NCBI RefSeq assembly: GCF_016433145.1
Contig: NC_058130.1
Location: 801,137,137-801,200,652 of the forward strand
Source of the DNA: Gracilinanus agilis
Taxonomy: Eukaryota
Direction of reading: 5' to 3'
DNA length: 63,516 bases
Position numbers and translations under genes: made by a program
Notes under the pieces: generated by a model
Told to the model about the DNA's origin: nothing
The model's database searches: none
Seen by the model: the letters and a program-made list of their open reading frames with translations, nothing else
Shown here: positions 2,179-39,901 of the stretch, in pieces
Position numbering within the stretch: position 1 is the stretch's first letter
Layout of the letters: the number at the start of each line of letters is the position of its first letter

Positions 2179-8478
<6,300 letters not shown>

Positions 8479-11040: not shown

Positions 11041-11046
11041 TTTATT
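11041..11046 (-). terminator. Probable polyadenylation signal (AATAAA on minus strand) of the SLC25A1-like gene
   Basis: TTTATT at 11041-11046 is the first canonical hexamer I found downstream of the stop, giving a 3'UTR of about 0.85 kb. Confidence 0.6.
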
Positions 11047-11885: not shown

Positions 11886-14800
11886 TCACCAGATCAGGTT
11901 CAGAAATTTGACAATTTCGTCATACAGGACGAAGACGACGGCCACGTCCAGGCAGACCCTGACCAGGCGCGGAAGGGTTCCCTTGTAAAACCTGCCGAAG
12001 AGGAAGTGGGGGCAAAGGCAAAGGCCTCTGGAGAGGAAAGAGCCAGGGAGACCCGAGTGCAAATCCAGCCTCGGGCACCAGTCCCTGAAGCTCTGCTTGC
12101 CCGAGTGCCCTTCTCTGCGAGTCCGTCCCTCCAGGGTCCTGGGGAGGGTCACGGGAAATCCAGCAGGCACAGCACCTACGTCATCCCTCCTTGCTCCCTG
12201 CCATCCCTCAGGGCTGGTGTGCAGCTCCGGGAGCTCCCCTCTCCTCCCCTCCCGGATGCCAGAGAAGAACACGGAACATTTATCCAGTCTTTACTGTGTG
12301 CCTGGCACCGTGCCATTTGCTCTGCCTTTAGGAGCTCACTTGACCCTCCCAACAACGCTAGGAAGGAGGTGCTCTTATCTCCCTCAGTTAACAGATGAGG
12401 ACGCTGAGATGGACAGAGGTCCAGTGACTGGGCCAAGTTCCCACAGCTGGTGTCGGAGGCTGGATTTGAACTCGGGTCTCCCTGACTCCAAGGCTGGCCT
12501 ACTATCCACTGTGTCACCTAGTTCCCCCTGAAACTCCAAACTGTGGACCGGGGAGCCAGGGAGAAGTAATGGTCCCAGCTCGCCTGCACTCCACTCCCGG
12601 AAAGGGAGCCCCCAAACCCCAGCCCGGGCAGCAGGCTCAGGTGTGGGGGGGCCTCTGGTGGCTCTCTGGGCACTTGGACCTGAGGCAGCAGCAGAGAAGG
12701 CCAAGGCCCACTGCTGACTTTCAGGGTCAAATTATTCAAGCAAAATGTCTGGACAAGCCAAGACCTGGGCTCCCATGCCAGGGAAATCTCCCTGAGGGCT
12801 TAGGGTGGGCACATCTTAGGAAACTGTTGTACAGGCAGTGCCAGGGAGTTCTCGGTCACTTACGCCCTGACGCCCTCGTTTTTATAGACCTGGATGGCAC
12901 AATCCAATGTGTTTTTATACTTGGAGGCTTCCAGGCTCTGAAATGAAAGATTGGAGACCAGTGAGGGGCCTGCCTTTTGTTTTCTCTCCCTATCTCAGGC
13001 AGGCACTAAACATTTATTAAGGGCCTACTATGTGCCAGGCATTGTGCAGAATTCTGGGGTTACAGTGAGGAAAAGATTCCTGCCCTCAAGGTACTTACAT
13101 TCTAATGGGGCAAGACAACACCCAAAAGAAAGGCGAACATAGGTGCGGAGGGCACGAAGGTGCCCCACACAGGGAATCTGTCTATCCATCCATCTGTATG
13201 TTCATCCATGCGTCCATCGATCCATCTGTCCTTCCATCTATCCGTCCGTCCATTCATCCATCCATCTATACATTCATCCATCTAGCTAGCTACCTCTGTC
13301 CATCTATCTGTGTATCCATCTATCTATAGCTATATCTATATCTATATTTGTGTCTGTGTCAGTGTCTCTATCTGTGTCTATATCCATATCCATCCATCCA
13401 TCTATTCGTTCATGTGTCCTTCCATGACCAGGTCTTTCTACCTTGTCCAGCCTAGAAGTGCAGTGACACTCGCCAGTCCAGTCCCTCAGGACTTCTGGCC
13501 TGCTCCATTTCTCTGACCTAGACCAGGGTCCGGGTCCTTCAACCGCCTGGCGGCCACCCTACTCCAAGAGGCTCACCCTCTTGGGGCCAGACTGCATGCA
13601 GATATCTAGTGCAGCTCCAGAGATCAACCAGCCTCAGCTTCTGAGGCCTCCCCAAGGACTGATTGCCAGCACCCTGCGCCCCGCGGCAGGCGAGGCCTCC
13701 AAAGCACTTGGGTCCCTGCCCTTTGTGTCCATTCCTTTGGGAGCCGGGAGCGTGAGGTGCTTAGAGGAATTTTTTTTTTTTTTTATCCTGGGACTCCATT
13801 CTAGGAGCATAGGGCCACAACCAGTAGGCAATGGGTCACACAGTCGCTCAGGGTTGCCCAGCTGGGAAGTGTCTGAGCCCGGGTTTGAACCTGGGACCTT
13901 TCGTCTCTAGGCCTGGCTCTCCATCCACTGAGCTAGCCCAGCTGCCCCTACTTTAGGTTGCAGTTTCTTTAGTTTTACAGGGTGGGGTTGCTAGCCCCAC
14001 GCCCAACCCTCCTCCTTTTTCATCCGGGCTAGGGACCGTCCCTGGCCCAGGAGTGGTAAGGGTGGGCAGTAGGGGTCAAGTGACTTGCCCAAGGCTTAGA
14101 GGAATTAAGGGGGCACAACTCCTGCCCGAGAACAAGGCTTTCCACTTCAAGTGGGCTTCCTGCTGGTTTTCCCCCAACGAGCCATCAGGCAATGACTGAC
14201 CCCCCTGGCTTTGTTTTACCTGCATCCTTGTTTTTACCACATCAACTGGGGTGTTGCCAAAGACACTGGCTGCTCCTGCGGTGATCCCAAAGATAGCCGT
14301 GATGACGGGGTTCATCTTTTTCTGCGGATTATCATCTAATGGAGACATCAGAGAGAGTGCGAATGCTAGCCAGACCACTGGCCTCACTGGCCCAAGCAGG
14401 CCTTTTAGTCACTCTTCCTGTCCCGGAGCCCAGTTCCGGCCCGAATGCTTGCACCAAGGGAGAGAGGCTGGGGGTCTTCTAGAAGAGAAGAGAAGTGCCC
14501 TGGAGGGACCTGGGAGCCCAGTCTGGCTCTGGTCTGACCAGGGGCCTCCTTAATTGGCTGCCCCTGTTGCAGTGCCCTGGGGGAAGGGCTTGGTCAACCA
14601 GGTCAGCCTTACTCTGGGTTCTGCATCTGGTCTTGGCTTGATGTCTTCCTGCTCTGAGATATCTGGCGAGAGACAGTGCTGTAACGAGAGGGGCCTCGGA
14701 CCTGTGCTCTAGCAGGATCCAAGGCCTTCCTCCGCACCGCACCTGCCTCCCCTTCCCCAGCCGGTCCTCGAGGTTTCTACTCAGCCCAGAGTGAGCCGAC

Positions 14801-17800
14801 CAGAACTAGTGAGAGAATGTCTGTACGGTGGGAGCATCGGGTCTGACTCTTCATCACACCAGTCCTGTCTGGGGGGCTTCTTAGAGTGGTTCTTCAGTGG
14901 ATTAAGGCAAACAGAAGTTCAGTGACTCGCTCAGGGTCACACAGCTAGTAAGTGTCTGAGGTTTGATTTGAATTCAGGTCTTCCAGACTCTAGGCTCAGG
15001 CCAGCTAACTGCCTCCTCTGAGGCACCTTTTGGAGCCCAGCATCCTGATGCCACTCCCAGATGGGCAGGAGCACTAGTGGCCCTCTGGGGATGCTTGTGG
15101 GCATCTGGGCTCAGAGTTCATGGCCTTCCATTCCTTTTTAAATGGCCGGAAGCCTAGGCCTGGGCTATGGCCAGCTGGGCCCTAGCACTCACAACCCTGG
15201 CCTTGCCATCCGCCTCATGCTTCCCCCAAATACACTCCTCCTTCCTCCTTGCTCAGAATGATCTTCAGGTCGGTGTGACCATTGCTGCTAGGAGGGGCAT
15301 GGCTGACCAGCCCAAGCCAGCCTCCAAGGAGAGTCCCCGAGACTCTAGGTCGTGGCATCGCTCCCCGGTTTCTCCTGCCCTGTTCCTAGCCCACGATGCC
15401 CGACCCTTCTGTTGGGCCCTCTGGAGCCCCGTTCTCAGAAATCCCTCGTTCCACATGCCAGCTCCAGTCTTGGTGCAAATGATTTCCTCCAATAGGATTC
15501 TTCTTGAGAGATGGATTTGGCGAGCCAAAGGCAGGGGCAGCGTGTTCCAGGGGTCCAGTAGTCCGAGACAGGCCAGAAGAGGTGTCTGTGTTTGAGCCCC
15601 GAGGCCACCAGCAGGAAGCCAGGGGTTCTCAGCAGCGAGGCAGCAGGGAGGCCGATGGGGAAACGAGGACCGAGAGGGAAGGAGGAGCTGCAAGACTTGG
15701 CACCCAGCATGAAAGGGAGAGAGGAGAAGGAAAGAGGCTGGCTAAGGCTCCCATGCGTGAGGGGGAGTGAAGGCGGGAAGCCAGCCAGCCAGGCTTCGGA
15801 GGGGCTCTGACGAATTCCATTCAGGGCACGCCGAGTTTCCAGTGCCGGTGGGGCATCCAGGGGTCGGCCTAGTGCTGCATTTAGGGGAGAGCCGAGGGCT
15901 GGACAAACTGATGTGGGAGTCATTCTTCAGCTAATCATTGAATCCGTGGTGCAGAAACTGGGACCTTCTTGATACCAGGCCCACCCAATGCCCTGGTGAT
16001 GAAGCACCTCCTGGGTGCCAGGCGCTGGGCTACTTCTAGGGGTACAGAGAAAGGCAAAGGGGCCCCTGTGGTCCTAATGGGGCAGGCAGCCTGTCAGGAA
16101 GGGCATGAAGCAGGGCTCAGAGACGAGTCTGAGCCGAGCTTCCGGGCAGCAAAGGGCAAGAAGGGCAGGTCATGAAGAGCTTCCAAGGCCCCGCCAGGAG
16201 CCCCTGGAGATGCCAGAGAGTCGGGGAGAGGCCGAGGGCACCTGTGCCTTCAGGAGGATGACTTTGGCAGCCCGATGAGGTGGTGCCGCCTGCCTGGTCC
16301 AGGGGTGGGGGGGGCAGAGATGGGAGATGGGGGAGGCCCCCCTTTCTGTCTTCTGGCCCAGTGGACTTCAGGAAACAATGGTGGGGATCTGGGTGGTCCC
16401 TGACCAGAGGCTCCTGGGAAGGAGGCTCTGGCTTATCTCAAGCCCAGCACCCAGCCAAGAGTGGCCCTCAAAGGGCCTTGGCAATGGGGGGGGAGCGGAC
16501 ATAGAAGGGAAGAGGATCCAGAAGAAAAGGCGGGGCAGCCAGGAGGCCAGGGGGTGGCCCAGGCCCAGCCTGGGCTCTCTCAGGCAGGGGGAGGGAGCAG
16601 AAGGAGCCCTTCCGCTCTGGATGTCGGAGCTCAGCTCAGCCAGGGCTGGCTGGCTGGGGGGTTGGGTGGGGCAGGAGGGGCAGAGGGTCCTTGAGGAGCC
16701 AGGAGAGGGGCTCGAGACACTGTGTTCTGCCCTTCGCCCCCTGGGAATCCCAAGGGTTCGGCCTCAGGGCCTCGCCCCTTTCCCAAGATCCCCTCTGACC
16801 GTGCTCAAGGAGCCCCCAGACTCCCAGACTCCCCCCGGGGCCCAGGCCTGGCCATTACCTAGGTACCAGTTGCGGAGGGAGGTCATGGTGAAGAAGCGGA
16901 TGGCCTGGTTGGTTCCTTGCTTGATGATGGTGGCGGTGATGCCCTGGTAGATTCCGTGTAGGCCTGGGGCGGGGAGGGAAGGGCGTCCCCACACATCACT
17001 CTCGCTCCTCCCTCTCCTTCCCCTCCTCCACCTGAACGGGTCCCAGGATGCTGCCCCAGGCAGGGAGGACTGGGGCTGAGGCCCTGGCCTCGGGGGGCCC
17101 AGGGGCTCCAGAGGGGGCACCTCCGCAGACGGGGCCACAAGTACCTTGTTCCCGCACAATCTCCTGAACCCCATGAAAGAAGCCGCGGTACTTGGCTTTC
17201 CCCATCTTCTGATCATGAATAAATTTCACCTGGAGACGACCAAAGGGAAGATGGTCTTCCTGTGGCCAGACTCCGGGTGCCCCAGGCTGCCTCCCTCCGG
17301 TGCCAGGGCCCAGGGAGCCCGAGCCTCTCGCCTGGGGACAAACCCTTCTTCCTGGCACGGTTTCTAGGCAGCCCCATCACAGTTCTCCAGGCTGAGGCTG
17401 CCACCGTCTGCTGAGCCAAAGAACGTGAAGCTGGCACCAGGGGGCGGGTAGGCAGTGACACCACCCCCAGGCCTGTCCCGGGCCCTCGGACGGGAGGGAC
17501 TGGTTTCTCTCAGCCCAGAAAGCTGCGAGTTTCACCTAAAAACTAACCCAACCCCCCCCCCCCACCGGCCAAGGGCAGAGGCCTCTCTCCATTGACGGGG
17601 AGCCCGGGGAGACGTGCAGGAGAGACCGAGATGTAGGTGCGAGACGAGGGAGACAGAGAACAGACAGGCGGAGCACAGCTAGAGGAGGACGGAGACGTCC
17701 CCCCCCCACGGGGAGCTGGGGGAGTTCCTTGGCAGCTGGGGCTTCGCCTGGGCTCAGGATCAGGGTTGGTCCTTGCCCAGGCTCGGTGGCCGGCCGCCTC

Positions 17801-20800
17801 CCCGGGGCCCGTCGGGATCACCATTTCTACCACGGAAGCCTCTTCCTGCACTGGCTGTGCCGGTGCCGTGATTCTAACTCCATAATCATGAGGGCTCCAA
17901 GGCTGAAGTCTAAGGCCTTGCTGCCACCCCCTCTCCTAGCCTGGGCCCCCCAATCCCTTGTGTCTTCTGCTCCGTAGCTCCCTGCCTGCTTCGCTCTGGG
18001 CGTGGACTTAGCCACGGTGCTGTCGGTCTTGGTGCCGGGCCAGGGTCCCCCTTCCGCGGGGCCATCCCGGGCTCCCCTTCAAGGCCCGGGCCCCCTCTCA
18101 AGGCAGGGTCAGAATGCTCAAACCTTGATGGTCTCCAGGGGGCAGACGATGACAACGGCCTCCATGCCGCCGGCTCCGAGGCCACAGAGGAAACTCCTCA
18201 TGTTGCTCAACTTGCCATTGGCGTCTCTGGCGTAATTGCTCAGGAACTGAAATGTGCCAAACCTGCCGAGAACATGCCCAGAATGAACGGCCCGGGCCGC
18301 CCTGCCTCCAGACAAGGACGGTCTGCTGGCACCGGGCCGTAAGTACTGTTCAAAATGACGAAGGAAGGACGGGAGGAAACAGTCTCTGGGCAGTCCTGCT
18401 CTAGGCTGAGCAGGCTCTGGAGGGCCCCCGTGGAACTCGGGAGCGGCTGCAGCAAAGCCACAGGCAAGGCCCCGCCTCGGATGCTGAAGCCTGTAATGAT
18501 GAGGGGGCGTCTCTGGATCTTCGGGAGCCGGGAGGAATGACCGCCCAGGGCCTTCGGCGGGGTGCCTCACTGACCCAAGGCTGCGTTTGGCTTCACGGGG
18601 CGGCCCCAGGAACAAAGGGGGGAGTTCTAGGAGGACACGAGACTGCTGTGGCAGCAGTGGCCTGGACCTCCTGGAAGGCAGAGGCTCCCCTTGTGGGAGT
18701 CACCCCGAGAGCTGCCAGGACTCCAGACTCCGGGACACATTTTCCGGCCTTTTTCCCCCGTTTTCAGGCCCTTCTGGAAACAATTTCTGACCTTTGAGGG
18801 CTCAGCTTCTCCCTCCCTGTCCCAGGTGGTAACCAGTCGGATCGGGGCTACAGCAGTGCTTTCATGGAGTGCGTATTTCTGCACTGCTCGTGTCACAGCG
18901 GAAGACACACATCACACACCCCCAGCAGTTCTTGCCAAATAGGGAGCCTCCCCCCAGAGTTTGGGTCTTTGGGATACGGTCCCTAACGACCGTGTGTGGA
19001 TCGCCTGACCTTCTCCGTTGATCCGCCACTCCATTTCTTAGCCAGTACCAGACTGGTTTCGTGATGACCCAGAGGGGGCACCGTTTTTTCATTGGTTCCC
19101 TGGCTATGGCTGGCCTTTCGTTCTTCCAGATGAAGTTCGGTGGTGTTTTTTGAGTTCCGTGAAATACTTTTTGGATAGTTTGATGGGCGTGGCAAGGCAG
19201 TGGAATCTGGACCCTGCTGGCTCAGCCTATCCATGGGCAACTAATGTCTTTCCAGTTGTTCAGGCCTATCTTTATTAGGGTGAAAAGCGTTTTGCAATTG
19301 TGTTCTCACAGTCGCTGCCTTTGTTTTGGTGGCACACCCCGAGCTGCTTCACATTGTCCTTTTCCACCTCTTGCTCTACGGCTTCATGGGTGTCTGAGCT
19401 TGATTGCTGACTGGCTCTAGGTAGGACTAAATAAGGGGGGAGCTTGGAAGGGAGGCTGACCAGCCTCTCCCTGCTGGTGGTGGCCAAGGCCCAGAGCTCC
19501 GCAGGCTCCCGGGGACCTTTCTGCCCCGTCATTCATGAGACACTTTAAGGCTTTTCAGGCGGGCATCCCAGCCATCTGTGAGCAGGCCTGGCAGGGCACC
19601 AGGTGAAGTCCCAGCAGGACCAGGAGGGCGAGGGGGCAGTGTGGGAGCAGCCCTCCAGGGCACTCACCTCACTGCTGACTTGGGCATAGCGCCATAGAGC
19701 AGGCTGCTGAGGCCCCGATAGAGGCCCAGGATGCCGTGCTCCTGGATGGTCAGCTTTATGCAGTCACCTGGGAGACAGAAGGGAGAAGAAGGGTCATCAG
19801 GGAGCCTGGGGGGGACCCAGGCCGCCGGGTGGGGGGGGGGCACAGAGGAGGGGGCGGCTCTCTCACCCACAGTGGTGTACCGAGGATTCTTGGCCTTCTC
19901 CTCCAGCTGCATCTGGGTCTTGATGTACTCTGTGGGGAAGGTGACAAAGACTTCGATGCCTCCAGCGATGCCACCTGTGGGAGAGANNNNNNNNNNNNNN
20001 NNNNNNNNNNNNNNNNNNNNNNNNNNNNNNNNNNNNNNNNNNNNNNNNNNNNNNNNNNNNNNNNNNNNNNNNNNNNNNNNNNNNNNNNNNNNNNNNNNNN
20101 NNNNNNNNNNNNNNNNNNNNNNNNNNNNNNNNNNNNNNNNNNNNNNNNNNNNNNNNNNNNNNNNNNNNNNNNNNNNNNNNNNNNNNNNNNNNNNNNNNNN
20201 NNNNNNNNNNNNNNNNNNNNNNNNNNNNNNNNNNNNNNNNNNNNNNNNNNNNNNNNNNNNNNNNNNNNNNNNNNNNNNNNNNNNNNNNNNNNNNNNNNNN
20301 NNNNNNNNNNNNNNNNNNNNNNNNNNNNNNAGACAGAAGGAGGGAGCCAGGGACAGAGAGAAAGATGGGGGAGAGGGAGACGCTGTGGGACTGTGGAAAG
20401 CCATCTGGAACTTTGCCGGGTGTCGGCCCAGGCCCCCGTGTGGCCCTTTTTTGTGGGAACGAAGGACTGCTGTCGGCAGGCAGTCAGGCCATGGCAAGGG
20501 ACAGAACCACCAGACACGCGCGCACACTCAGACAGATCTAAATTGGGTCGCCAGATTCCCGGGCCTGGCAGGCCCGGCCGGGTCCCAGACAAGGGGTGCC
20601 CCCTCACTCCCCGGCGCTCTCCCCCTTTTCCAACCCACTCCGGGGCTAAGGGGGTGACTCCCAGGGCAGGGGAGGGTTCCGGACCCCCGTCCACCATATC
20701 AGGGAGCCCTGTTGGGGGCTGAAGTTCCACTGCCGGGGTACGACCAGGAGATCTGGGAGGGGCATAGGCCTCCAGGAGGCACTCCAGATGCTCACTGACT

Positions 20801-21173
20801 TGGGGCACAGCCTGGGCAAAGGCCCGGGGATGGGCTACAGTCCAAGGGGGAGGGGAGGATCCGAAGGGAGGGGGCCGGGAGGGCTCTCCACCGAACAGAC
20901 CAGGGAGGAAGGGAAGGGGGGCCGGGAGGGCGGCGGAACTCCCCGCATTAGCATGAACAACCGTGGCCTCCACGTGACCCGGGCAGCCATGACCCCCCCC
21001 AAGTAACGCCCCTCCTGCCGCCACGCCCCCGACCACGCCCCACTACCGGCCACGATCGCCTTCCCCGTGTGGGTGTTCTTGGTGCAGTGGAGCTTCGAGG
21101 CAGCGGCCAGGCCCAGGCTGAGGCCTCGCTGGGGGAGGCCGGGGCCGAGGCCCTCCTCAGCCTTCCGCCTCAT
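11886..21173 (-). CDS. SLC25A1-like: Mitochondrial citrate (tricarboxylate) carrier paralogue, complete, 319 aa; exons 21173-21047, 19974-19867, 19767-19668, 18262-18124, 17229-17145, 16963-16859, 14335-14220, 12937-12864, 11991-11886
   Basis: Nine GT-AG exons total 960 nt in one open frame. ATG at 21173 has A at -3 and an in-frame upstream TAG at 21189-21191; stop TGA is at 11886-11888. Three carrier signatures are present (PTEYIK, PLETIK, PVDVVK) plus citrate-carrier motifs [17 protein letters not shown] and [11 protein letters not shown]. Internal exon sizes 108/100/139/85/105/116/74 equal those I recall for SLC25A1. Confidence 0.93.
12270..12520. mobile_element. MIR-type SINE (GC-shifted)
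   Basis: Motifs ...tgtgcctggcaccgtgc...cagatgaggacgctgag...cacagctggtgtcggaggctggatttgaactcgggtctccctgactcc. Confidence 0.7.
12995..13125. mobile_element. L2 LINE 3' end fragment
   Basis: aaacatttattaagggcctactatgtgccaggcattgtgc...cctgccctcaagg...acattctaatgggg is the typical L2 tail. Confidence 0.7.
13181..13410. repeat. Degenerate (ATCC)n/(ATCT)n microsatellite
   Basis: Read directly from the sequence. Confidence 0.85.
13772..14093 (-). mobile_element. Composite SINE (SINE1-like segment + RTE-5'UTR-like segment + second tRNA-derived SINE head + A tail), 5'-truncated
   Basis: Poly-T at 13770-13784; 13-bp TSD GCTTAGAGGAATT at 13759-13771 and 14094-14106; a homologous independent copy at 41200-41490. 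Confidence 0.8.
18915..19460 (-). mobile_element. L1 ORF2 fragment in intron 3 of SLC25A1-like, strongly GC-enriched
   Basis: Minus-strand translation gives degenerate L1 ORF2 motifs [29 protein letters not shown] and SLFGKNCWG. Confidence 0.8.
19987..20330. other. Assembly gap, 344 N (SLC25A1-like intron 1)
   Basis: N run. Confidence 0.99.
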
Positions 21174-21682
21174 CCTAGCCAAGGGGTCCTAACTGCGAGC
21201 GCCGCACCCCTCACTCTCCTCGAGCCCTCCCCGGCTCCGCCCCTCGGCCTCCACGTGGCCCCGCCCCTAGCCTAGGCCTCACCCCTGCCGTGACCCGCCC
21301 CCCCCTCCCGCCAGGCATTGATCCCGCCCATCATCTGCTTTGGGCCTCTCTGAGGGCGGGTGGGGCGGGGCAAGCCTAGTCCAGGCGGAGAAGGACCAGT
21401 CCGCCCCCGGCTTCTGATTGGCTGTTGGCAAAGGGCTCGTGGCCCGGATTGGAGGCGGGGATCCTCTCGGTGACAGGCTGAGAGACTGACCGGCTCCCAA
21501 GAGGACGCCTTCCACCAAGCCCTCGACCCTCCTAGTCCCGGCGGAGAGCGCCCGGAGCACCGGGAGGTCCCTTTTACGGACAGTAACCTGAGGCCCCTAC
21601 AGACCGCGCGTTGGCCCGCCTCCGTTTCTGCCTCTGCCGGGCTGCGCGCGGGAGGCCGGCTCCAAGACCGGAACTCGGCCCA

Positions 21683-21719
21683 GTTGCCAGGGAAACGCGT
21701 TCCCGGCTACCATGGCGAC
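21683..21719. promoter_or_regulatory. Two RFX X-box-like motifs: GTTGCCAGGGAAAC (21683-21696) and GCTACCATGGCGAC (21706-21719)
   Basis: Both resemble the 14-bp palindromic RFX consensus GTTRCCATGGYAAC and sit at the 5' end of a motile-cilia gene, where X-boxes are expected. Confidence 0.7.
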
Positions 21720-21789
21720 CAGAGTGTTTGCGGGGCCCGGTGGCAGAGGCCGGGGCAGCTCCGGACAGTGCGCTCCTCAGCGCGCCTGG
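21700..21789 (+). other. TEKT1: Putative non-coding first exon of TEKT1 (start approximate)
   Basis: Strong donor TGG|GTAAGG at 21789/21790; matching acceptor tctcttccctccag| at 23364/23365, 17 nt before the TEKT1 ATG. Confidence 0.6.
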
Positions 21790-23348
21790 GTAAGGCCCGA
21801 GGGGCCTGCGAGGAGGGGCTGCGGCGCCCATAGAGGCCCGGGGCCGGGGCGGCCGGGGCGCCCCCCCCCCACTCCACGCTCCTTCCCCTCCTTCCCCCCC
21901 TCTTTTTCTCCCTCCCCTCCCGGATGTTGGAGCAGGGCGGGGGGAGAAGGTTGTGGCTTTGAGCCCGCGGGCGGCCGGGCGGCCGGCGTGCTCCCTAGCG
22001 GCCCCTCCCCCGGCGGGTCTCCTATCCAGCACCATTTCTTCTCTCTTGGATGCCAGATTGTGCTCCTCTTCGCCGGGACGCCGGGGGCCACTTGCTGCAG
22101 TAATTTGGGGTCTAGCGAGCTGCCTTTGGGCCAGGTCAGGGCGCGGAGGAGACGGGAGCAGCCCTGGGCCCTGGGGAGGGGCAGCCAGGGAGGCCAGGAA
22201 TTCGGCTCATATCATTTGGGTTTGGAAGGCGCCTCTTGGAGGACGACGTTAGGGCGGGAGCAGCTTGGGGACCCAGAGCCTCTCCCCTCTCTTCCAGCGA
22301 GTCTCCCAGGTTGCACCGCGCCTCCTTGTGGCCTTTGTCTAGTTCCCGACCTCAGCAATGTCCCGACAGCCCTGGCTGCGCCCCAGGGGTGGCGGGCCCC
22401 TACTAGCCTCTGTATTCTTCAGACAGCTTCTCTCAACTCCTGGCAGCGCCCGAAGCCCCTGGGGGCAGCCCTCGAGTCTGCTGTGCCCACCCTCCCGGCC
22501 TCTTGGAACCGTCCTTTCCCCTTTGCCCTGGCTGCCAGGCCATTTCTCCCAAACACGCTGCTGCCTGAAATTCCCCTCCCCCTCGTCAGCTGGCCTGACT
22601 CTCTGGGTCTGCGCCAGCCTGTGCCCTGATGTTCCCTGCCCTGCCGCTTCGCAAGCTGGGCAAGGTTTAGAGCCCCTGCCCTTTGCCCCAGGAGTGGCTG
22701 CCACCCTATGGCTGGGCATTCTGACAGTTCTCCAGTTGTTGGCCCCAAGCCTAGTATGGGGTTGGGGATGGTGGGGGCAGTCGGTGCCCTTTAGGAAGGC
22801 TGGTCACTACTGGCCCAGGAGGCACAGTTTGCCATAGGAAGAGTCAGCCCTTGCTCTAGGCTCCCTTCTGTCTGGGCGCACTGGGGCGAGAGGGTGGGGC
22901 TAGAGAAGGCTTTGAGCCCTTGTCCTCACAAAGGGGACACCTGGGAAAGTGAGTGTCTCTCCAATCTCTGCTCTCCCAAACCTAGCAGTGGGGTACAAGA
23001 GTGTCCAAGGAGGTAGCTGCAAAGGCCCCTCAGGCCCCCGAGTAAGAATGCCCATTTCTGATGGAGGGACTCAGAGAGGGCTTCGTGGTGGAGGGAGCTT
23101 TCTGCTAGGCCTTAAAGGATGGCTCAGATTTCACCGAGATGGGGTTGGGGAGAGACTTGGGACTGTCACAAGCAAAGGCATGAGAGTTCATGGTGGAGAT
23201 GAGTGAGGGTGTGTGGTTGGAGACATTGAGAGGCCAGTGCTGAGTTGTAAAGGAACTCAAAGGCTCAAGCTCTGGGCAGGGGGAGAATGAGGAAGACGGA
23301 GCTGACTGGCCCCTTTCGGGGACTTGCCAGAGCCTCCTGAGTTTCTGA

Positions 23349-28176
<4,828 letters not shown>

Positions 28177-28178
28177 TC

Positions 28179-28678
28179 NNNNNNNNNNNNNNNNNNNNNN
28201 NNNNNNNNNNNNNNNNNNNNNNNNNNNNNNNNNNNNNNNNNNNNNNNNNNNNNNNNNNNNNNNNNNNNNNNNNNNNNNNNNNNNNNNNNNNNNNNNNNNN
28301 NNNNNNNNNNNNNNNNNNNNNNNNNNNNNNNNNNNNNNNNNNNNNNNNNNNNNNNNNNNNNNNNNNNNNNNNNNNNNNNNNNNNNNNNNNNNNNNNNNNN
28401 NNNNNNNNNNNNNNNNNNNNNNNNNNNNNNNNNNNNNNNNNNNNNNNNNNNNNNNNNNNNNNNNNNNNNNNNNNNNNNNNNNNNNNNNNNNNNNNNNNNN
28501 NNNNNNNNNNNNNNNNNNNNNNNNNNNNNNNNNNNNNNNNNNNNNNNNNNNNNNNNNNNNNNNNNNNNNNNNNNNNNNNNNNNNNNNNNNNNNNNNNNNN
28601 NNNNNNNNNNNNNNNNNNNNNNNNNNNNNNNNNNNNNNNNNNNNNNNNNNNNNNNNNNNNNNNNNNNNNNNNNNNNNN
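28179..28678. other. Assembly gap, 500 N
   Basis: N run of round length, typical of a scaffolding join. Confidence 0.99.

Positions 28679-28729
<51 letters not shown>
28679..28729. repeat. (AC)n microsatellite at the contig end; mirrored as (GT)n at 63466-63516
   Basis: Read directly from the sequence. Confidence 0.95.
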
Positions 28730-28733
<4 letters not shown>

Positions 28734-29469
28734 AAGCCACTTGATATGATAAATTAATTTATCATTTCCACAAATAGCCAAATCACTTCAGAAGAAAAAG
28801 TTTCAAAATAAGAATTTAGAATCAGAATGCTATAGGCTATCAAAACACATTATCAACAGGGTTGATAAGATAACATCACAACTTTTCCAAATATATACAT
28901 ATATATAATTGTTTTAAAAAGTTTAGTTCATAATTTAATAACATCTAGAACAAAGGGAAATATGCCTTTACAACAATTTACCAAATTTCACCTTATTGTG
29001 AGCAATATTCAAGAATTTAAAAAATAAAACAACTCATTGCCAAATTTTCAAATGATCTTATGCAGGATTGCTTTTTATCACATTTAAAACTATGTATAAA
29101 GTTATCTACTATAAAGTAATTCTATTCCTTTAAAATTATAATCAGACTTCATTAAAGAAATAATTATAAAAACAATTAGCAGTGTATTTATCGTGATTAA
29201 CATGATTATTTACATTGAGTTCCAATTCAATAAAAGTTTATATTACACTCAGTAAGAAAATATACTTCACTGTCAATGAAACCACAGCATGATTTAGTTT
29301 CAGCATTAAATCAGGGTTCACTCACACCTATAACTTCATTCTTATTTCCTTTCAATGATCTGGGCCAATATTTGCTCACTAAATAATAGCTTAATAGTTC
29401 TTTTTTCTGGTGAATCCTTCCTCCAAAAGCTCTCTTCCTTGTCTTTTTCAAACCTCACATTCCCCCACT

Positions 29470-30257
29470 GTCACCCCCAATAGGGGCTTCAGGAATTTGA
29501 AATGGACCTACCTTTGTTCACCCCCAAGATCTGCTCAGGAAAAGGAAATAACAATGCAAATAAAGAAGCGTATTTAAATTCATGTGAGTGTTTGAATGGT
29601 TCTGAATTTCCTTCAACTTCTCCAAAATTGGACCCTCAGTACTAATTTCATCAAGAGGGATGGAGAGGTTGGCTGTTCCTGACTTTCCTATTCAGTCAGC
29701 CTTGGAGAGTTTGTGAAGGATTTATAACATCTACATTTTATAACATTTTGTAACATTTTATAACATTTTGTAACATTTATAACATCTGATCTAATTTGAA
29801 CACTTTTGGACCAAAGACAAAGGAGCTCCGGGGCCATAACTCAGAGCCCCTCTGCGGGCAGCAAAAGGCAGCTGCTGGACCGTCACAGCCACCGACTCAG
29901 TTTCACATCAAGATCTTGGCTAACGGAAAGAAATATCTCTACCACGTTAAGTAATATTTTGTTTTGGAATTAGGATAGTAAGATAGAAATTATAATTTAG
30001 TAAGTTCAGTGTAGAATTAAGTAGGAAGGCCAAGTGATGAAAGCTGGTTGGGAAACATGTAGTTTTTATTACTTAATAGGAAATCTTTTATAATACTTAA
30101 TTTCCTTTACTTCCTTTTACTTCCCTTTTATTTATTTAATTAGTAGTTATAATAAATAAGTTTTTTTTAATAACTGGCCTGAGAAAGATTTTTTAGAACT
30201 GCCTGGTGGCCATATTTTTCCAATGAACAAATTGAGAACCTGTTCACACCTTATACA
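29470..30257. mobile_element. Possible LTR remnant (boundaries uncertain); mirror at about 61938-62725
   Basis: TG...CA candidate ends, internal 10-bp tandem (TAACATTTT[G/A])n at about 29723-29786, and TATA-like and AATAAA motifs. No TSD found. Confidence 0.35.
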
Positions 30258-31189
30258 ACTATTCGTGTAGTCAATATACCAATGATTAGTAATGGGTCAA
30301 TACCCTTTACAGCATTCCCAGGACTGAGGCACCATTGATCCTGAAGTAAGATTTTTATTAGACTGGTGGTATACTGAGCAATTTTGGTCAACCACAGCAA
30401 AATGGCCAACAGAATCTCTTGAACAAGAATGTGCCCTTCTGGGTTAAAGGGGGAAGTACTTGGTGGTCTTGTGGTGACACAGACCTTTACTACGGAGAAT
30501 CTACTGATTGCCAAAAAAAGGTCATTCTTCAACCTTTATGTTTTTGAACAAGGAAATGATTTGTGAGCTGATTCATTCAAGCCTAAAAAATCATTTAAAT
30601 ATCAACTTCTCACTTGTAACAAGTTTGGGGTGCCCTGAGCAGAATCACAGGGGTTATGGAATTTCCTGAAAGCAACAAAATTCTGTTCCTAAGCCAGATC
30701 ACTAGTGCCAGTGGATCTGCCACCATGCAAAAAGGATAAAGAAAGCCTACTTTTCAAGGGATTAAAATTAGACTTCTACAGCTAAAATGGACTGAATACC
30801 AAACCTCTTGCTTTTAAAATGATTTATCCTGCAGTGTTTTGGGCGTACCACACAAAAGTCAGAGTGGCTCTACCACAAAGAAGAACAGAGTGTCCAAGTG
30901 CACCTTTTCCTGGGTGTCCACCAGACTTGGTTTTCCTCTCAAGTGAGGAGCTCAATCTGTGAACTTAATGAAAACCCAGAAAGGCTGATTTAGATCTGCT
31001 CTGAAAATTTCCTCTAACAGTTTAAAAGATATTCTCTTTGGACCCCTCCTTCATGCCTTTCCCCTCCCCAGGAAACCTACTGGGAAACCTCATTATCCTC
31101 CAAGATTAAATAAACCTCCATACTCATCAGTCTCTTCTGCCCTTCTGATTGGATCCTTTGACTGGATGGCAGGTCTGTGGGCATTATGG

Positions 31190-32130
31190 GTTTTTTTAAA
31201 ATATAATTGTATTATTATTTTTAAATATTTTTTCCATGGTTACATGATTCATGTTCTCTCCCTCTCCTTTTCCCCCATCCCATGGCTGAAAAGCAACCCC
31301 ATCAGGTTATACATGTATTATCACTCAAACCCCATTTCCATATTATTCATTTTTGTAATAATCTTTTAAATCCAAAACCCCAAACCTACATCCATATAAA
31401 CAAATGACAAATCATATGTTTTTCTTCTGCATTTCTACTCCCACAGTTCTTCCTCTAGATGTTGATAGTATTCTTTCTCATAAGTCCTTCAGGATTGTCC
31501 TAGATTTTTGTTAGAAGCAAAGTATCACATTTGATTGTCCCACAGTGTTTCAGTTATAATATTCTCCTGGTTCTGTTCATTTCATGCTGCATCAGTTCAT
31601 GTAGCTCTTCCTAGTTCTTATAGAAATCAAATAGTTCACCATTCCTTATAGCACAATAATATTCCATTACCACCATAGGCCACACTTTGTTCAGTCATTC
31701 CCCAATCAAGGGACACCCCCTCATTTTCCAATTTTTTGCCACCACAAAGAGTGTGGCTATAAATATTTTTGTACAAACATTTTTCCTTATTATCTCTTTA
31801 GGGCTCAAACCCAGCAGTGGTATGGCCAGATCAAAGGGTATGTATTCTTTTAAAACCCTTTGGGCATGATTCCAAATTGCCTTTCAGAATGATTGGATCA
31901 ATTCACAACTCCATCAGCAATGCATTAGTGTCCTAATTTGGCCACATCCTTTCCAACATTTAATATTTTCCATTACTGTCATATTTTCCAATCTACTAGG
32001 TGTGACGAGGTACCTCAGAGTTGTTTTGATTTGTATTTCTCTAATAAGGAGGGATTTAGAACACTTTTTCATATGATTATTGATAGTTTTTATTTCTTCA
32101 TCTGAAAAATGTCTATTAGTATCCCTTGAT
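31190..32130 (-). mobile_element. L1 3' portion (ORF2 C-terminus + 3'UTR); mirror at about 60065-61005 (+)
   Basis: T-rich start followed by marsupial L1 3'UTR/ORF2-like sequence (e.g. rc ggaaaggatgtgg...ggacactaatgcattgctgatggagttgtgaattgatccaatcattctg). Confidence 0.8.
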
Positions 32131-32305
32131 GGTCATGGGCATTATGGGACATCACCACAGTCTTCTCTCTTTTTCCCACTAACTACTCTGCTTTTGGACT
32201 TTCCCATCATGCCCCTGTGCTGGGTACTTTCTGCATTCCCTTTCTTTCCTCCTTTCCTTTTCAGCTTTCTCTTGTGTGTTATCTTCCTCCAGCTTGATGA
32301 CCACT

Positions 32306-32504
32306 GGGGCAAGTAGGTGACACAATGGATTGAATTCTGGACCTGGAAGTAGAAAGACCTGAGGTCAAATCTGGCCTCAGATACTTCCCAGCTGTGTGAC
32401 CCTGGGCAAGTCACTTGAACCCCATTGCCTACCCTTACCACTCTTCTGCCTTGGAGCCAATACACAGTATTGACTCCAAGTTGGAAGGTGAGGGTTTAAA
32501 AAAA
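32306..32504 (+). mobile_element. Opossum SINE1-like tRNA-derived SINE; mirror at about 59691-59889 (-)
   Basis: ggggc...tcaaatctggcctcagatacttcccagctgtgtgaccctgggcaagtcac...ccttaccactcttctgccttggagccaatacacagtattgactccaag...ggtttaaaaaa. Confidence 0.85.
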
Positions 32505-33274
32505 TAATTGGGACATAAGTCTACTAAAATAGTTTTGTTTAATCTAACATTAATCTAATATCCAAGTCACTTCCTATTTAGATACATCTCCAAATTGACA
32601 TAGTTCCCTCATGCCCTCCAACATATCTCTCTCCTCCAAGATAAGTTGAGATAACATTATAGGAATCTTGAACAAAGAAAATATGTTAAAATACAATTTT
32701 GTACTTTTGAAAACAGTCAATATTCAGTTCTTTCCTAGAGTCCTCCTCTAGGGTCCTCCAGAAACAGAAAAGGGATCTATTCTCAGCCTTCAGTTTGTAG
32801 ATCATGCCTCTGATAGACATATTGTACAATCCTAGCATATAGACAAAGGGGAGAAGGTCCTGTTGAATTGACTCAGATTAGCTATGGTTAGTAATGGAGT
32901 CCAGCTAGAGGATGAAGCTGGCTGTCCTAACAAGAGGGAGGGGTAAGAGTGAGTAGAATTCTTTCTCCTCCCCCACCCCTGGGAGCAGTTGGACCAGAAG
33001 GCAAAAACTGTTTAACTGAATCCCTCTTAGTTCAAGCTATGGAGGCTGTACAAGCTTGGTAAATTCAGGGGCAAGTTGGTAAACTGACAGGGAATAATCC
33101 CACTGAGGTCAGCAAGTCTCACTGTTTAAACTATTCCCTAAACCCTAGGATAGAATAGACTCCAGGTTGTCTTCAAATACAGATGACTTGCTCTCAAGGA
33201 AAGGAAACTGCACCAGTGCTTATATGAATGGATCTTTCCTTTGGTAAAGTATATGGATGGTGAGTATATCCTAG

Positions 33275-33802
33275 TGTAACTTCACACAGGCCCAGTACCT
33301 TAACAAGAAAGGGGGTTTATTATTTTCAGGAAAACAGGGTGAGGGGAAATGGTTTTAGGGATGAAAGGGAGGTAAGCTAACTAAAATCTTCAATGAACTT
33401 GTTGGCTACACATTTGGAATGTGTTTTGAACAACTTAACTTCTATCCTACTCACTAAGTAATCTTTCTCCTAATCTAATGTACCTAAGTTAAAGATGGAA
33501 AGGTAATCTTGCTTGAAGATCTGTATAGAGATTACTTAAGATGCTGCAATTGAGATATTCTTCCAGTAGTAAACCAGTAAAGTAACATTCAGCCCTTGAG
33601 GTCAGAGATGAGCTAACCAAAGAGTAATCTAACTCTCCCTCCCAGCCCTTGAACCCACAAGGAGTGTGATCAAAGAATCCTTACAAGTAGGGTGACCTGG
33701 CCTTTGTACTCAGGTTTCTAACTGCCCCAACTACCCCGTCTCCTGGAGTTCTGGGGGGGCACTATGGAATTCTGTGCCCCACTTATGATCATGGATGTTA
33801 CA
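33275..33802 (-). mobile_element. LTR-like element; mirror 58393-58920 (+)
   Basis: Perfect 6-bp terminal inverted repeats TGTAAC...GTTACA and an AATAAA in the element orientation. No TSD. Confidence 0.55.
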
Positions 33803-33977
33803 GTAATCCCAGTTTTCTAGTATATAGAATTTCCACTAGAAATTCTGCAAGCATCTTGCATCTTGCACACTTCACCTTGCTCCACTCTGCACCTAAATCT
33901 CTCTATCTTTAGCAACATAAAAAAATCTATCCTTAAGACTGATACTAACTGTCTACCACCATCTAGGAAGGCAAAGT

Positions 33978-35460
33978 ATGGTCAGTGAAGAGCAGGATAC
34001 CTTACCCTACTCATGGTCTGAGAAAAAAGAGATACAAAATGACACTGATAGGCGCATAAATAATTTTTCTGCACCAAGATGCAACACAGAAATACAGACT
34101 GAGGCACAGAGAATCCAAACAGACAAATTTAAAGGGGAAATACCACCATTACAATCACAGAGTCCTGAGTCAGTACAAGTAGAAGTCCAAGAGCAAAATC
34201 AATGGGATTTAGATTGTACTGATATAGAGGCACCTTTGATACCTGTTAATCAATATGCTAAAGACAAGGAGCCCTTGATAATGGTGAAGATTGGAGAACA
34301 AATCTACTCAGCTTTAATCGATACTGGTGCAACTAGATCTGTACCAGAAGATTGCACTTTAATGGGATCTGTGAGAGTTAAAGGAGCCATTGGGCAAATG
34401 GAGTTGGTGCCCAAGCTAAGATCTTGAAGCCGTCCACTGACTCCATGAAGATTCCTAGTGGGTTGGACACTCAGAAAGGGGAACCAAGGACTGAGTGAAA
34501 ATGGGTTACGGGTTAAGGACTAATGGAAAGGGAACATAAGGTGAGAATAAAGACACACAGACACAGAAAGTTCTGGCGTAAGGTAGACAGACATCGAGTA
34601 AGCTCTGATGGTCAAGAGCTTCTACCTCAACTGTCATATAGCTACTTTTATTAGGGTTACAATCATACACGGGGGGACGAGGAAGGCAAGTGGTCTGATG
34701 TGAGGTAAACATCACGAGATACAGACTGTTGGACCCTAAAGCAATAGATAGAGCAAACATCTAGATCCAGAATCTATATGGCCTAAGGTCTTGATACTAA
34801 TTACTTGTTTTTTTGTAAAATAAGGAGCCTGAGATAACTGACCAGTCCTCCAGAGTGTAGCCTTAGGGAAGGGCTAGGAATTTGGCAAGGTTGAGGTTTA
34901 ATTCAACTCAAGGTTACCGAAATCATTCATAAGCAATACAAGAGTCATTTTTGAGCACTCTTAAAATAATATCACAATTAATGTATACCTGGATTCCTAC
35001 AGATCTAAAATGGTAAAGACAGGCCCAATGACTTTGGATCATTCATTTCTATTGATACCCGGACACCCATCCAATCTCTTAGGGAGGGATATCCTTTGCA
35101 AATTAGGTGCAACTATCTAATGGGACAAGTCTGGCCAAATATTCCTACATTTACCCAAATAGTCACTCAAGCACCATCCTTTGCTGTTCCTGGGGCAAGT
35201 GGTGGTGGTGGTGGTGGTGGGGTGATGAGGAAGAACATCATATGGGGAGTATCTTTGAAATCCCTGAAGATATCTCAGAGGCAGTTTGGGCAAAGCATCC
35301 CACTGATGTAGGAATTTTAAAATCTGCAACACCTGTCAAGATCGAGGTGAAAGAGGGCACTCCACCTAGAATTCCTCAGTATAGATTGAGTAAAGAGGCT
35401 ATAGAGGGTATCAGACCTATCATTCAGAGCCTCCTGAAGCAGAGCTCCATAGCCCAAAGA
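33978..35460 (+). mobile_element. Degenerate ERV pro-pol fragment (aspartic protease + start of RT), interrupted by a solo LTR; mirror at about 56735-58217 (-)
   Basis: LIDTGATRSV active-site motif; after the insert NLLGRDILCKLGATI; then VWAKHPTDVGILKSATPVKI...IPQYRLSKEAIEGIRPII. Stops, frameshifts and a (GGT)n insertion are present. Confidence 0.85.
34425..35001 (-). mobile_element. Solo LTR, 577 bp; mirror 57194-57770 (+)
   Basis: TG...CA ends; 5-bp TSD GATCT at 34420-34424 and 35002-35006; AATAAA followed by a U5-like tract in minus orientation. Confidence 0.88.
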
Positions 35461-35497
35461 CTTTAGTGTGGAGAAAGCAATGAGCTAAATAAGAGAT

Positions 35498-36225
35498 TGT
35501 GAAAGGGAATTCTTTATTCTCTTTGTCTATTTTGAGTTAACACTAACTGAAGTACCCCTAATTAGTACCTCACCAGACTGTGAAGTGTGAATCAGACTTT
35601 CTTTTAGTACCCCTACTTAGTACCTTACCAGACACTAAATAAGAGTGTTCTCAAGTCATTTGCTAAAGTGGGTAACAACTCAATGTGTCAGGAAATTGTG
35701 AATCCTTTTGATAAGAGTTTACACCTCCAGAGGATGAGAAGTGGATGGCAAGACATTGCCCCTCTGGGCAGTGCTAAACAATTTGAAAGCTGTGATAGGC
35801 CCCTGTGAAGAGGAGAAAGGACAAGAAGTCATTATAAAAGCCCTGAATTTCTAGGGCTAGAGGGTCAGCTTCAGGAGTTGTCCTAAACAAGTCATCTTCT
35901 TCAGCCCTAACTGCCTCTTGGAGGGAACTTGGGTGAGTGAATAACTCTTTCCTTTCCTGACTTCTTAAGAGAGATTAATTCTGGTTGAGGGTTAACAAGT
36001 GGTGCTGGGCTAAGTGGAGCACCAGAGCAATATTTAATGTGATAAGCTAAATATCTTCTCTACCCTCTTTTTGTATTTCTCAACTTTCACTCTCTCCACC
36101 TATTCTGTAAATAAAAAATATTGAAAGTTATTTTGACTTGAGCTATGATATTTTAAATCAGCAACCACCATATTATTTATAATTTTCTTATATTTTAGTC
36201 AAACCCTTAAATTTAATTCCTTTCA
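35498..36225 (+). mobile_element. Solo LTR, 728 bp (4-bp TSD, ERV1-type); mirror 55970-56697 (-)
   Basis: TGTGAAAGGGAATT...AATTCCTTTCA termini; TSD AGAT at 35494-35497 and 36226-36229; TATAAAA near 35834 and AATAAA near 36110. Confidence 0.85.
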
Positions 36226-36849
36226 AGATACATTTAATTTTAGTTTTGGTTATTAACTAGGATAACTCAGATCCATTTTGCTAAGAAGAACTTTCTAATC
36301 TATCTTCAAATAAGGCAGTTGGGCAAAGATGTTCAGACCAGAAAAACTATTAATTTTTAGCATTTTCAACTTTGCTACAAAAAGTTTTGAAAATGTTTCC
36401 ACATTTCCCCCTTTTGTGCTAGTTTTTACAATTTGCTCAAAGTAACATCTATGGCTATTATTTCCAGATTCTCAATTTTATATTAATCAGGACCAAGATA
36501 CATCTGTCTGATTTGTCCAAAATTAACACCAGGTTTATACATATGCTTCCATTTTATGTATTTTATTTTATGCATTTTTAAACAATATTATGAGAAGGTG
36601 TTCATAGCCTTTATGAGATAGCCAGAGAAGTCAGTGACAAATGGTAATAATTTACTGTCTAACTTGTCAACACATACTCAAAGTCTGTTGTTGCTTTGTG
36701 CCTGCCAGGGGGCTCTGCCTTCAATCCTAGTTTGAAAAATATATAAAATGAATATAATGAGAGTTCTCAACTAGGTGGGGAATATAATAGGAAAATGTTG
36801 TTGATTAAGATGTGTTCCAGAAAATTATAAAGGGAAAGACAACTCTCTG

Positions 36850-37731
36850 AATTCTTTTTTTTTAATTTTAATTTTGAATATTTCATGTTCTTTCCCTCTC
36901 TCCCAAACACCTCTTAGCCCCCTCAACTGGCACACAATTCCACTGGGTTTTACATGTATCACTAATCAAGACCTAATTCCATATTATTGATAGTTGGACT
37001 AGAGTTATCATTTAGTGTCTACATCCCCAATAATATCCCCATCAGCCCATGTGTTCAGGCAGTTGTTTTTTTTTCTTCTTCTGTGTTTCTCCTTCCACAG
37101 TTCTTCCTCTGAATGTGGCTAGTTTTCTTTCTCATAAGTCCCTCAGCCTTGGTCTGGATCCTTGCATTGCTGTTGGTAGAGAAGTCTGTTATGTTCAATT
37201 GTACCACAGTGTATCAGTCTCTGTGTACAAAGTTCTCCTGGATCAGCTCCTTTCACTATGCATCAATTCCTGGAGGTCTTTCCAGTTCACATGGAATTCC
37301 TCCAGTTCTTTATTCCTTTGAGGTCTCTCTGAATTCTAATGACCTTTTCTCAATTCTCTTTGATCTCTCTGTAGCCTTTGTTATGGGTGACTACTCTCTC
37401 CTACCTGATATTCTTTTCTCTCTAGGTTCCAGAAAACCACTTTTTCATGGTTCTCCTCCTTCTATCTGAGTATGCCTAGTTACCCTAATAACGTTTTACA
37501 ATTTCCCAAGCAGTTTTTGTCAAATGGTGGGTTCTTTTACCAAAAGTGTGGGTCTTTGGATTTGTCAAACCCTAGGTAACTATGCTCATTTACTACAATG
37601 TGTTATTGAGTGCATAATCTATTCCATTGATCCACTACTCTATTTCCTAGCCAGTACCAGATTGTTCTCATGGTTGCTGCTTTATAATACAGTCTGAAGT
37701 CTGATAGAGTTAAGCTAATGAACTGTGTGTG

Positions 37732-37782
<51 letters not shown>

Positions 37783-38870: not shown

Positions 38871-39901
38871 TGGAATGAAATGTGTGCATTATTTCCCAAT
38901 ATACATTGATTAGTATTAATAATCCTGGATTGTCAACTTCCTATAGAAAAATAGTGAAGTTAGGTGCTCTCCACCAGAGATAACAATCTCTCCTTTTGAA
39001 GAGTAGAAGAAACCCCCTCCCCAAGGAGCTTTATACACATGTATTAATATAGGCCTTTAGTATGCTCTTTTTCAAATGGGGCTAAGAGACTATGATTCCC
39101 AAGACCCCACTCACTTCCTGTCATTACGTGCTGATGTAGACAGGAGATAAATTGGGTTAGCACACTTGCTTCTAGAAAGGAAAGATGTCCTGGAATGGGA
39201 TTTTGCCCCACTCCATGCAATGGAACAGCCCTGCCCACCATCCGATTAACCCTATTTGCCTCAGTTTCCTTGCCTATAAAATATGTTAAGAAAAGGAAAT
39301 GGCAAGCCTCTTCAGTATCTTTGCCAGGAAAACCCCAAAATGGGTTCTAGAAGGGTAAGAGATGCCTGAAGTGCCTAAACAAGAATAAATGTTTCTTGAT
39401 ATAATGATTGATTGATTCAGTCATCCATTCTGAAGGAGTTAAAGGTCTTATCAATGACAGTGGGTAAAGAAATGGAGGAGGGACATCAGCAATACTGAAG
39501 TGAGCATTAAATGTCAGGCACAAAAGACAGAAGGATAAAGAGGAACATTTTCACAATCATGAGATAAGGAAATTCAATAGGGTGTTACCACTGAGAAAAC
39601 TAGTGCAATTGATGGAAATCTTCAGTTAAATGTACAAAGTAGATATGATTCAAGTATTACCACGTTCATGAAACAGATATCCCAGAATGACACAGGCCAT
39701 TTCTCAGGTACTTCTGCTTTGTGAAGGAATTCTGATTCAGTGTTCCAGAACTTTTTTTTTCTCATAGGAAAGAATTTGGACTTGACTCATAATTGAAGAG
39801 CAATGGGAATGAGCTAGTTCCAAAACTGCCAGCAGATGGAGTCAGTGTGGTTCTCTGGATTTCCACTATAAACTACTTGCTCTCTTATTCCCCTCAGTTT
39901 C

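Follow-up and report, generated by a model that had tools for sequence, protein, structure and literature searches.

A likely second, ancient citrate-carrier gene beside TEKT1 in the agile gracile opossum

Introduction

The catalogue of human and mouse mitochondrial carriers holds 53 SLC25 genes, of which one is a citrate carrier, and work on citrate export, lipogenesis, the 22q11 deletion and 2-hydroxyglutaric aciduria consequently assumes a single gene. Zebrafish has two, slc25a1a and slc25a1b, treated as two orthologues of human SLC25A1 (PMC4746751, PMC4487986, PMC6567007), with identities to the human protein of 78 and 84%, respectively (PMC4487986). Here we describe a window, that is, a whole stretch of 63,516 nucleotides (nt) from the agile gracile opossum, Gracilinanus agilis (assembly GCF_016433145.1, contig NC_058130.1, positions 801,137,137 to 801,200,652 of the forward strand), which contains a mitochondrial-carrier gene on the minus strand at 11886-21173 (all coordinates are those of the window). 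We believe, with a probability of roughly 0.8, that this gene is the opossum copy of an ancient second citrate-carrier gene, called here A-type as opposed to the true SLC25A1 or B-type, and likely an inner-membrane citrate exchanger. A literature search turned up no account of a second citrate carrier in tetrapods, nor of its loss in placentals. The gene thus adds to a well-known family a member that has been predicted but not yet described.

Results and Discussion

Gene Structure

The gene has nine exons with a coding sequence of 960 nt, giving 319 amino acids (aa) plus a TGA stop, and GT...AG ends at all eight introns. Its ATG (21173) has an A at -3, with an in-frame stop 18 nt 5' of it. The only AATAAA or ATTAAA match in the ca. 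1.1 kb 3' of the stop, at 11046-11041, is a candidate poly(A) signal ca. 840 nt past the stop, which would imply a 3' untranslated region of about that length. The features are as follows.

21047-21173, minus strand: exon 1, 127 nt; ATG at 21173; variable N-terminal segment; GT donor
19987-20330, no strand: assembly gap of 344 N in intron 1, beginning 12 nt upstream of the exon 2 acceptor
19867-19974, minus strand: exon 2, 108 nt; first carrier signature P-T-E-Y-I-K; size and phase as in gharial exon 2
19668-19767, minus strand: exon 3, 100 nt
18124-18262, minus strand: exon 4, 139 nt; second signature P-L-E-T-I-K; query of the homologue search
17145-17229, minus strand: exon 5, 85 nt
16859-16963, minus strand: exon 6, 105 nt
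14220-14335, minus strand: exon 7, 116 nt; third signature P-V-D-V-V-K
12864-12937, minus strand: exon 8, 74 nt
11886-11991, minus strand: coding part of exon 9, 106 nt, including the TGA at 11888-11886
11041-11046, minus strand: candidate poly(A) signal AATAAA, the only canonical one within the ca. 1.1 kb searched after the stop

The translation is 100% identical (319/319 residues) to XP_044512680.1 of the same species, which NCBI names "tricarboxylate transport protein, mitochondrial-like", so the gene model was already in the databases as an independent pipeline prediction. This entry belongs to the 90% cluster of the Monodelphis protein XP_056662924.1, which has the same length and 94% identity to ours, with 19 substitutions and no indels. 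Against the A-type gene of the gharial, all eight introns fall in the same alignment columns and phases, and the sizes of the seven internal exons are identical. The join of exons 1 and 2 (phase 1) is among these matches and the protein is collinear with that of Monodelphis, so that nothing coding is expected in the gap; it should hide only intron 1 sequence, including the branch point, the 12 intron bases left between it and exon 2 including a pyrimidine run and the CAG acceptor. The preliminary description of this DNA had reported a complete nine-exon, 319-aa frame with canonical splice sites, a good start and a poly(A) signal, and had taken shared intron positions to exclude a retrocopy; both statements agree with the above.

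Some peculiarities of the gene deserve mention. Intron 2 (19768-19866) is 99 nt long, stop-free and in frame with exons 2 and 3 (the open stretch runs from 19984 to 19667), so that its retention would add 33 residues without truncating the protein. Intron 8 contains a long imperfect simple-repeat run of the (CCAT/CATC) type at 13180-13420. The models of a short isoform (205-208 aa) known from Dromiciops, tammar, dunnart, a turtle and the didelphine true SLC25A1 all begin with the same conserved internal Met (M-F-E-F-L-S-N), which corresponds to the start region of exon 4 (18250-18262). In both opossum A-type genes this Met is replaced by Thr (G-T-F-Q-F-L-S-N) and the short form cannot start there.

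Family Membership and the Citrate Site

The predicted protein matches Pfam Mito_carr (PF00153) in three stretches (E 9e-68; 224.5 bits vs a cut-off of 22.3) and contains all three carrier signatures P-x-[DE]-x-x-[KR], as PTEYIK, PLETIK and PVDVVK. Homologues were collected starting from exon 4 alone, which led to a horse relative and then to the stop-free stretch 18121-18699, scored on its exon part only; exon 4 returned mainly fragments from the representative library, and the last step used the full-length Monodelphis protein XP_056662924.1 as query. The best 120 homologues were 56-80% identical (the 100% match of the query to itself aside), and every one with a descriptive name was called a tricarboxylate transport protein, TXTP or SLC25A1. 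A search of the PDB found no solved citrate-carrier structure, the nearest being UCP1, UCP2 and the ADP/ATP carrier, and exon 4 alone had no match there. The product would most likely reside in the inner mitochondrial membrane, as judged from its family.

Eight basic residues (K97, R101, K190, R198, K245, R247, R282 and R285) are unchanged in the seven marsupial A-type proteins wherever these are covered. Residues are numbered as in the 311-aa Elephantulus protein, where exactly those eight positions are K or R, and their part in citrate binding is taken from the preliminary description and from PMC4746751, which gives the role of R247 and R282 in the citrate carrier. The six residues that the preliminary description had listed as retained (K97, R101, K190, R198, R282 and R285) are thus present not only here but in all seven marsupial copies. 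It had also considered the identity too low for a marsupial SLC25A1 orthologue, and this is borne out over the whole protein: 67-70% to eutherian citrate carriers, when true marsupial SLC25A1 reaches ca. 91%, and 63-68% to true marsupial SLC25A1.

The protein differs at 20 of 157 columns that are near-invariant in ca. 60 other vertebrate citrate carriers. Most of these are swaps among V, I, L and M, the less conservative ones being C41F, E106Q, P159A, T180I, V201T and G250S (same numbering). The marsupial A-type protein would best be read as a functional exchanger of the citrate type whose constraint has been relaxed or shifted.

Two Types of Citrate Carrier in Vertebrates

The vertebrate matches fall in two sets, one of ordinary "tricarboxylate transport protein, mitochondrial" entries ("B" in fishes) and one of entries named "-like" or "A". 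The A set includes sharks, coelacanth, bichir, paddlefish, bowfin, teleosts, a caecilian, a salamander, frogs, turtles, crocodilians and lizards, and single species such as Bufo gargarizans, Erpetoichthys, Polyodon and Dromiciops have both types. A quick tree recovered the A set, including five marsupial "-like" proteins, as a clade with 98% support in the Shimodaira-Hasegawa-like approximate likelihood ratio test, although with four very long outgroups that raised long-branch warnings. A more careful tree, with a beetle as sole outgroup and full-length marsupial rows, gave the A-type clade a support of 100/99. There the product of the window gene groups with six other marsupial "-like" proteins in a clade of their own (100/100), nested among tetrapod A-type sequences. 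When the marsupial copies were forced to group with mammalian SLC25A1, the approximately unbiased (AU) test rejected the arrangement (p-AU 0.0135, at a log-likelihood cost of 30.3). Only two columns separate A from B cleanly (Elephantulus 73 and 124), and all marsupial copies have the A-type residues, L and S, in them. Taken together, the comparison of sequences supports the placement of the gene in an A-type clade separate from true SLC25A1.

Marsupials also have the true SLC25A1. A true-type protein is present in Trichosurus, Petaurus and koala, Dromiciops has one protein of each type in the careful tree, and a true-type UniRef entry of three members has Didelphinae, which includes Monodelphis and Gracilinanus, as its common taxon. 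The names in NCBI and UniProt are a poor guide in this regard: in Tasmanian devil, dunnart, American alligator and common lizard the A-type protein goes by "tricarboxylate transport protein, mitochondrial" or "Solute carrier family 25 member 1", in the manner of true SLC25A1, and conversely the true-type protein of Dromiciops is named "-like".

Gene Order

The two types also differ in their surroundings. In the opossum window the carrier lies between two genes on the plus strand, convergent with a smoothelin-like gene and head-to-head with TEKT1.

5444-5599, plus strand: smoothelin-like CH-domain exon; Pfam CH E 2.3e-10; best solved relatives smoothelin and smoothelin-like 1
27892-28128, plus strand: TEKT1 exon; Pfam Tektin E 4.5e-22; best solved relative Tektin-1 (E 3.8e-28) vs Tektin-4 (1e-10)

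The CH-domain neighbour would be SMTNL2 by its position, in keeping with the SMTNL2-carrier-TEKT1 order initially proposed. The following arrangements were found in other species.

Monodelphis, A-type: F-box gene, tektin, carrier, CH gene
Gecko (Sphaerodactylus), A-type: XAF1, tektin, carrier, CH gene
Gharial, A-type: carrier head-to-head with a tektin gene
Tarpon, A-type: XAF1 adjoins the "A" gene; Rap-GAP, NLE (WD40) and inositol-phosphatase/SKICH type genes nearby
Brushtail possum (Trichosurus), B-type: carrier after a clathrin heavy-chain gene
Elephant shark (Callorhinchus), B-type: carrier after a clathrin heavy-chain gene

The neighbours in tarpon may be RAP1GAP2, NLE1 and INPP5K, which lie on human chromosome 17. 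These distinct and conserved neighbourhoods indicate that each type has held its own place since before the split of bony and cartilaginous fishes. The preliminary description had called the gene an old duplicate distinct from true SLC25A1, a reading that would have failed had the protein grouped within the SLC25A1 orthologues; the supported A clade, the AU test and the conserved gene order all side with it. A true SLC25A1 orthologue is contradicted by that test, by the 63-68% identity and by neighbours other than clathrin heavy chain. The further suggestion of an origin in whole-genome duplication fits the presence of both copies, in different neighbourhoods, in cartilaginous and bony fishes, which is consistent with such an event without proving it.

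Distribution and Possible Loss

A-type clusters include many turtles, three crocodilian genera, lacertids, geckos and the tuatara. Among the best 120 matches, in a search of proteins and not of eutherian DNA, there was no A-type protein of a bird, a monotreme or a eutherian, while bird and eutherian B-type proteins were present there. Combined with the single citrate carrier of the human and mouse SLC25 catalogue, these protein matches suggest, if weakly, that eutherians have lost the A-type gene, and they hint at a loss in birds. What had been proposed at the outset was retention in marsupials and loss in eutherians. The first part holds in seven species, the second gains some support from the same two sources, and the notion that retention is special to marsupials has to be abandoned, as most of the non-eutherian vertebrate groups sampled keep the gene.

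Rate, Constraint and the Proposed Scenario

The marsupial A-type gene has evolved 5-6 times faster than the reptile copy and than true marsupial SLC25A1. The marsupial lineage has 57 unique changes vs 11 in the gharial (p 2e-8), and the window gene has 70 vs 15 in the didelphine true SLC25A1. The increase falls on the marsupial stem (0.48-0.65 changes per column in three trees) and on the didelphid branch, and opossum and Australasian copies are only 70-75% identical. This acceleration points to either relaxed constraint or specialization. On the other hand, replacements between Monodelphis and the window gene affect 8 of 36 N-terminal residues and 11 of the 283 core residues (Fisher p 0.0004), as would be expected if purifying selection acts on the carrier fold. 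The window gene compared with that of the gharial gives a rate of nonsynonymous change (dN) of 0.22, a saturated synonymous rate (dS) and a dN/dS of 0.07-0.18, a figure for this one pair and not for any lineage. Dasyurid copies are 97.6% identical to one another. The core of the marsupial copy is still under purifying selection. Full-length orthologues exist in five other marsupials of three orders (Monodelphis, tammar wallaby, Tasmanian devil, antechinus and dunnart), and with the partial 205-aa model of Dromiciops the marsupial copies span four orders in all. Besides the two accessions given above, marsupial A-type entries include XP_072475132, XP_031813213, XP_051847479 and XP_074153830.

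The scenario that we favour is the following. The A/B duplication would predate the split of cartilaginous and bony fishes and was probably part of the early vertebrate genome duplications; the A copy would have had TEKT1 and a smoothelin-like gene as its neighbours from the amniote ancestor onwards, if not from earlier. Its product may, like SLC25A1, exchange citrate for malate or a related anion by an alternating-access mechanism. The marsupial branch would then have accelerated through relaxed constraint or specialization, with the core still constrained.

Several points weigh against this picture. With two long outgroups the careful tree left the backbone collapsed and the marsupial clade in a polytomy, and the backbone of the family tree is weak in general because citrate-carrier proteins are very conserved. 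The dN/dS is pairwise, as said above. As to expression, the single sequencing run matched by run searches also contains 92% of the words from a stretch that is mainly intron, and is thus DNA-like, and the Monodelphis orthologue was found in one contig, the genome itself, with no assembled transcript with its exact product on record. The evidence for true SLC25A1 in G. agilis itself is the UniRef entry at the level of Didelphinae. Finally, the fast evolution and changes such as C41F, E106Q, P159A and G250S could reflect an altered substrate or partial decay.

Alternative Explanations

The alternative that survives best, although we consider it unlikely, is that the marsupial protein has changed its role, with another substrate or other kinetics, or with use in one cell type (ciliated cells, sperm) through the promoter region shared with TEKT1. 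The marked acceleration along the marsupial stem and the branch leading to didelphids would fit this, as would the alteration of positions invariant in ca. 60 other vertebrate carriers. Besides, opossums, gecko and gharial have all kept the carrier head-to-head with TEKT1, and the interval between both genes in the window, a putative promoter by its sequence, is as follows.

21174-21790, no strand: GC-rich interval, head-to-head with TEKT1; many GC boxes; CCAAT box at 21414-21423; two X-box-like motifs

The two X-box-like motifs, at 21683-21696 and 21706-21719, are 10 bp apart (GTTGCCAGGGAAAC; GTCGCCATGGTAGC on the other strand) and lie ca. 510-545 bp 5' of the start codon of the carrier, immediately preceding what may be the first exon of TEKT1 (donor near 21786-21790). 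However, the count of such motifs in the whole window is not above chance (35 of 100 shuffles reach it), and the proximal region looks like an ordinary CpG-island promoter with GC boxes and a CCAAT box. The known citrate-contact basic residues are all kept and most changes are conservative, which also speaks against a new role.

More improbable is that the gene is intact on paper and unused, a relic that is silent or decaying and would end in the same loss as is proposed for eutherians. The 5-6 times faster rate, the DNA-like nature of the sole run, the lack of an assembled Monodelphis transcript with the exact product on record and the existence of several species with only short or odd N-terminal isoform models could be read in this manner. 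Against it, the frame is open and all splice sites are intact, full-length orthologues persist in five other marsupials of three orders, the binding-site and signature residues are all kept, the replacements between the two opossums spare the carrier core (p 0.0004), the overall dN/dS is far below 1 and the dasyurid copies are nearly identical (97.6%).

Least credible, and very improbable in our opinion, is that SLC25A1 was recently duplicated at the DNA level, in marsupials or in mammals only, and that the copy moved beside TEKT1 and then diverged fast: the long stem of the marsupial copies (0.48-0.65), which can be misplaced, and their polytomy in one careful tree leave some room for it, but a grouping with mammalian SLC25A1 is rejected in the AU test (p 0.0135, log-likelihood difference 30.3), gecko and gharial have A-type genes at the same tektin-adjoining place, both diagnostic residues are A-type, and long-branch attraction would draw the marsupial copies towards the long outgroup and not towards the short-branched tetrapod A-type group. 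A processed retrocopy was discarded altogether, given the eight GT-AG introns at gharial positions and phases.

Going beyond the ancient A-type gene itself, one may speculate that the therian ancestor had two citrate carriers, that the one linked to TEKT1 was deleted in eutherians and diverged fast in marsupials into a specialized carrier, maybe with other kinetics or another substrate, or else with use in ciliated or germ cells under an RFX-type promoter region shared with TEKT1, and that zebrafish slc25a1a, in wide use as a model of human SLC25A1, is its orthologue and slc25a1b the true one. As a whole this chain of events is tentative, and we would not bet on it.

Other Features of the Window

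The TEKT1 frame (27814-28178) enters a gap of 500 N at 28179 after covering only Pfam Tektin positions 192-270 of 383. The remainder of the gene was not found 3' of this gap (28179-28678) within the window, so the gene is cut by the assembly; in Monodelphis the whole TEKT1 gene spans 4.2 kb. At this gap the GC content falls from ca. 0.6 to ca. 0.35-0.45, and all the sequence beyond it (28679-63516) is a perfect palindrome, with arms at 28679-45848 and 46349-63516 that are 100% complementary and centred on another gap of 500 N (45849-46348). This has the appearance of an assembly artefact, in which a single contig of 17.2 kb was placed once in each orientation. The palindrome contains an open reading frame of 321 aa at 39902-40867 (minus strand), mirrored at 51330-52295 (plus strand), that by eye resembles the exon of a seven-transmembrane vomeronasal-type receptor, and frames resembling, also by eye, retroviral gag and protease.

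Implications

The surprising points are the age of the A-type gene, its retention in a mammal and what it implies for fish disease models. Most of the vertebrate groups sampled, marsupials included, have a second, older citrate-carrier paralogue. The fish "a" and "b" genes are probably not teleost-specific duplicates; both types are present in gar, bowfin, bichir, paddlefish, sharks, coelacanth and frogs. The zebrafish "a" gene, knocked down as a disease model, would then correspond, as an orthologue, to a gene absent from placentals, an assignment that follows the A/B naming of NCBI and the identities of 78 vs 84%, as the tree was built without a zebrafish sequence. Inconsistent database names can mislead work based on orthology. 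Marsupials would be the mammals in which to study how far two citrate carriers are redundant or divide the labour between them.

Comparison with Known Systems

SLC25A1 itself (CIC/CTP, linked to DGCR) has in common with the window gene the three repeats, ca. 67-70% of the residues, the eight basic residues and three P-x-[DE]-x-x-K signatures. It differs in that the opossum gene belongs to a separate clade, lies beside TEKT1 and a smoothelin-like gene instead of clathrin heavy chain, evolves faster (70 vs 15 unique changes against the didelphine true copy) and has 20 near-invariant positions altered. Processed retrocopies and pseudogenes of SLC25A1 are likewise derived from a citrate carrier and located outside the DGCR block; the window gene, in contrast, is interrupted by eight introns at ancestral positions, and its frame is intact. 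The closest relatives are the fish "tricarboxylate transport protein A" and the amphibian and reptile "-like" genes, which share the A-type clade and the XAF1/TEKT1 neighbourhood, the gharial gene being identical to ours in intron positions and internal exon sizes. Even so, the identity of the opossum protein to these relatives is only 64-70%, compared with 83-85% among the relatives themselves, and the teleost A proteins (361-386 aa) have in addition an N-terminal extension of ca. 45 aa.

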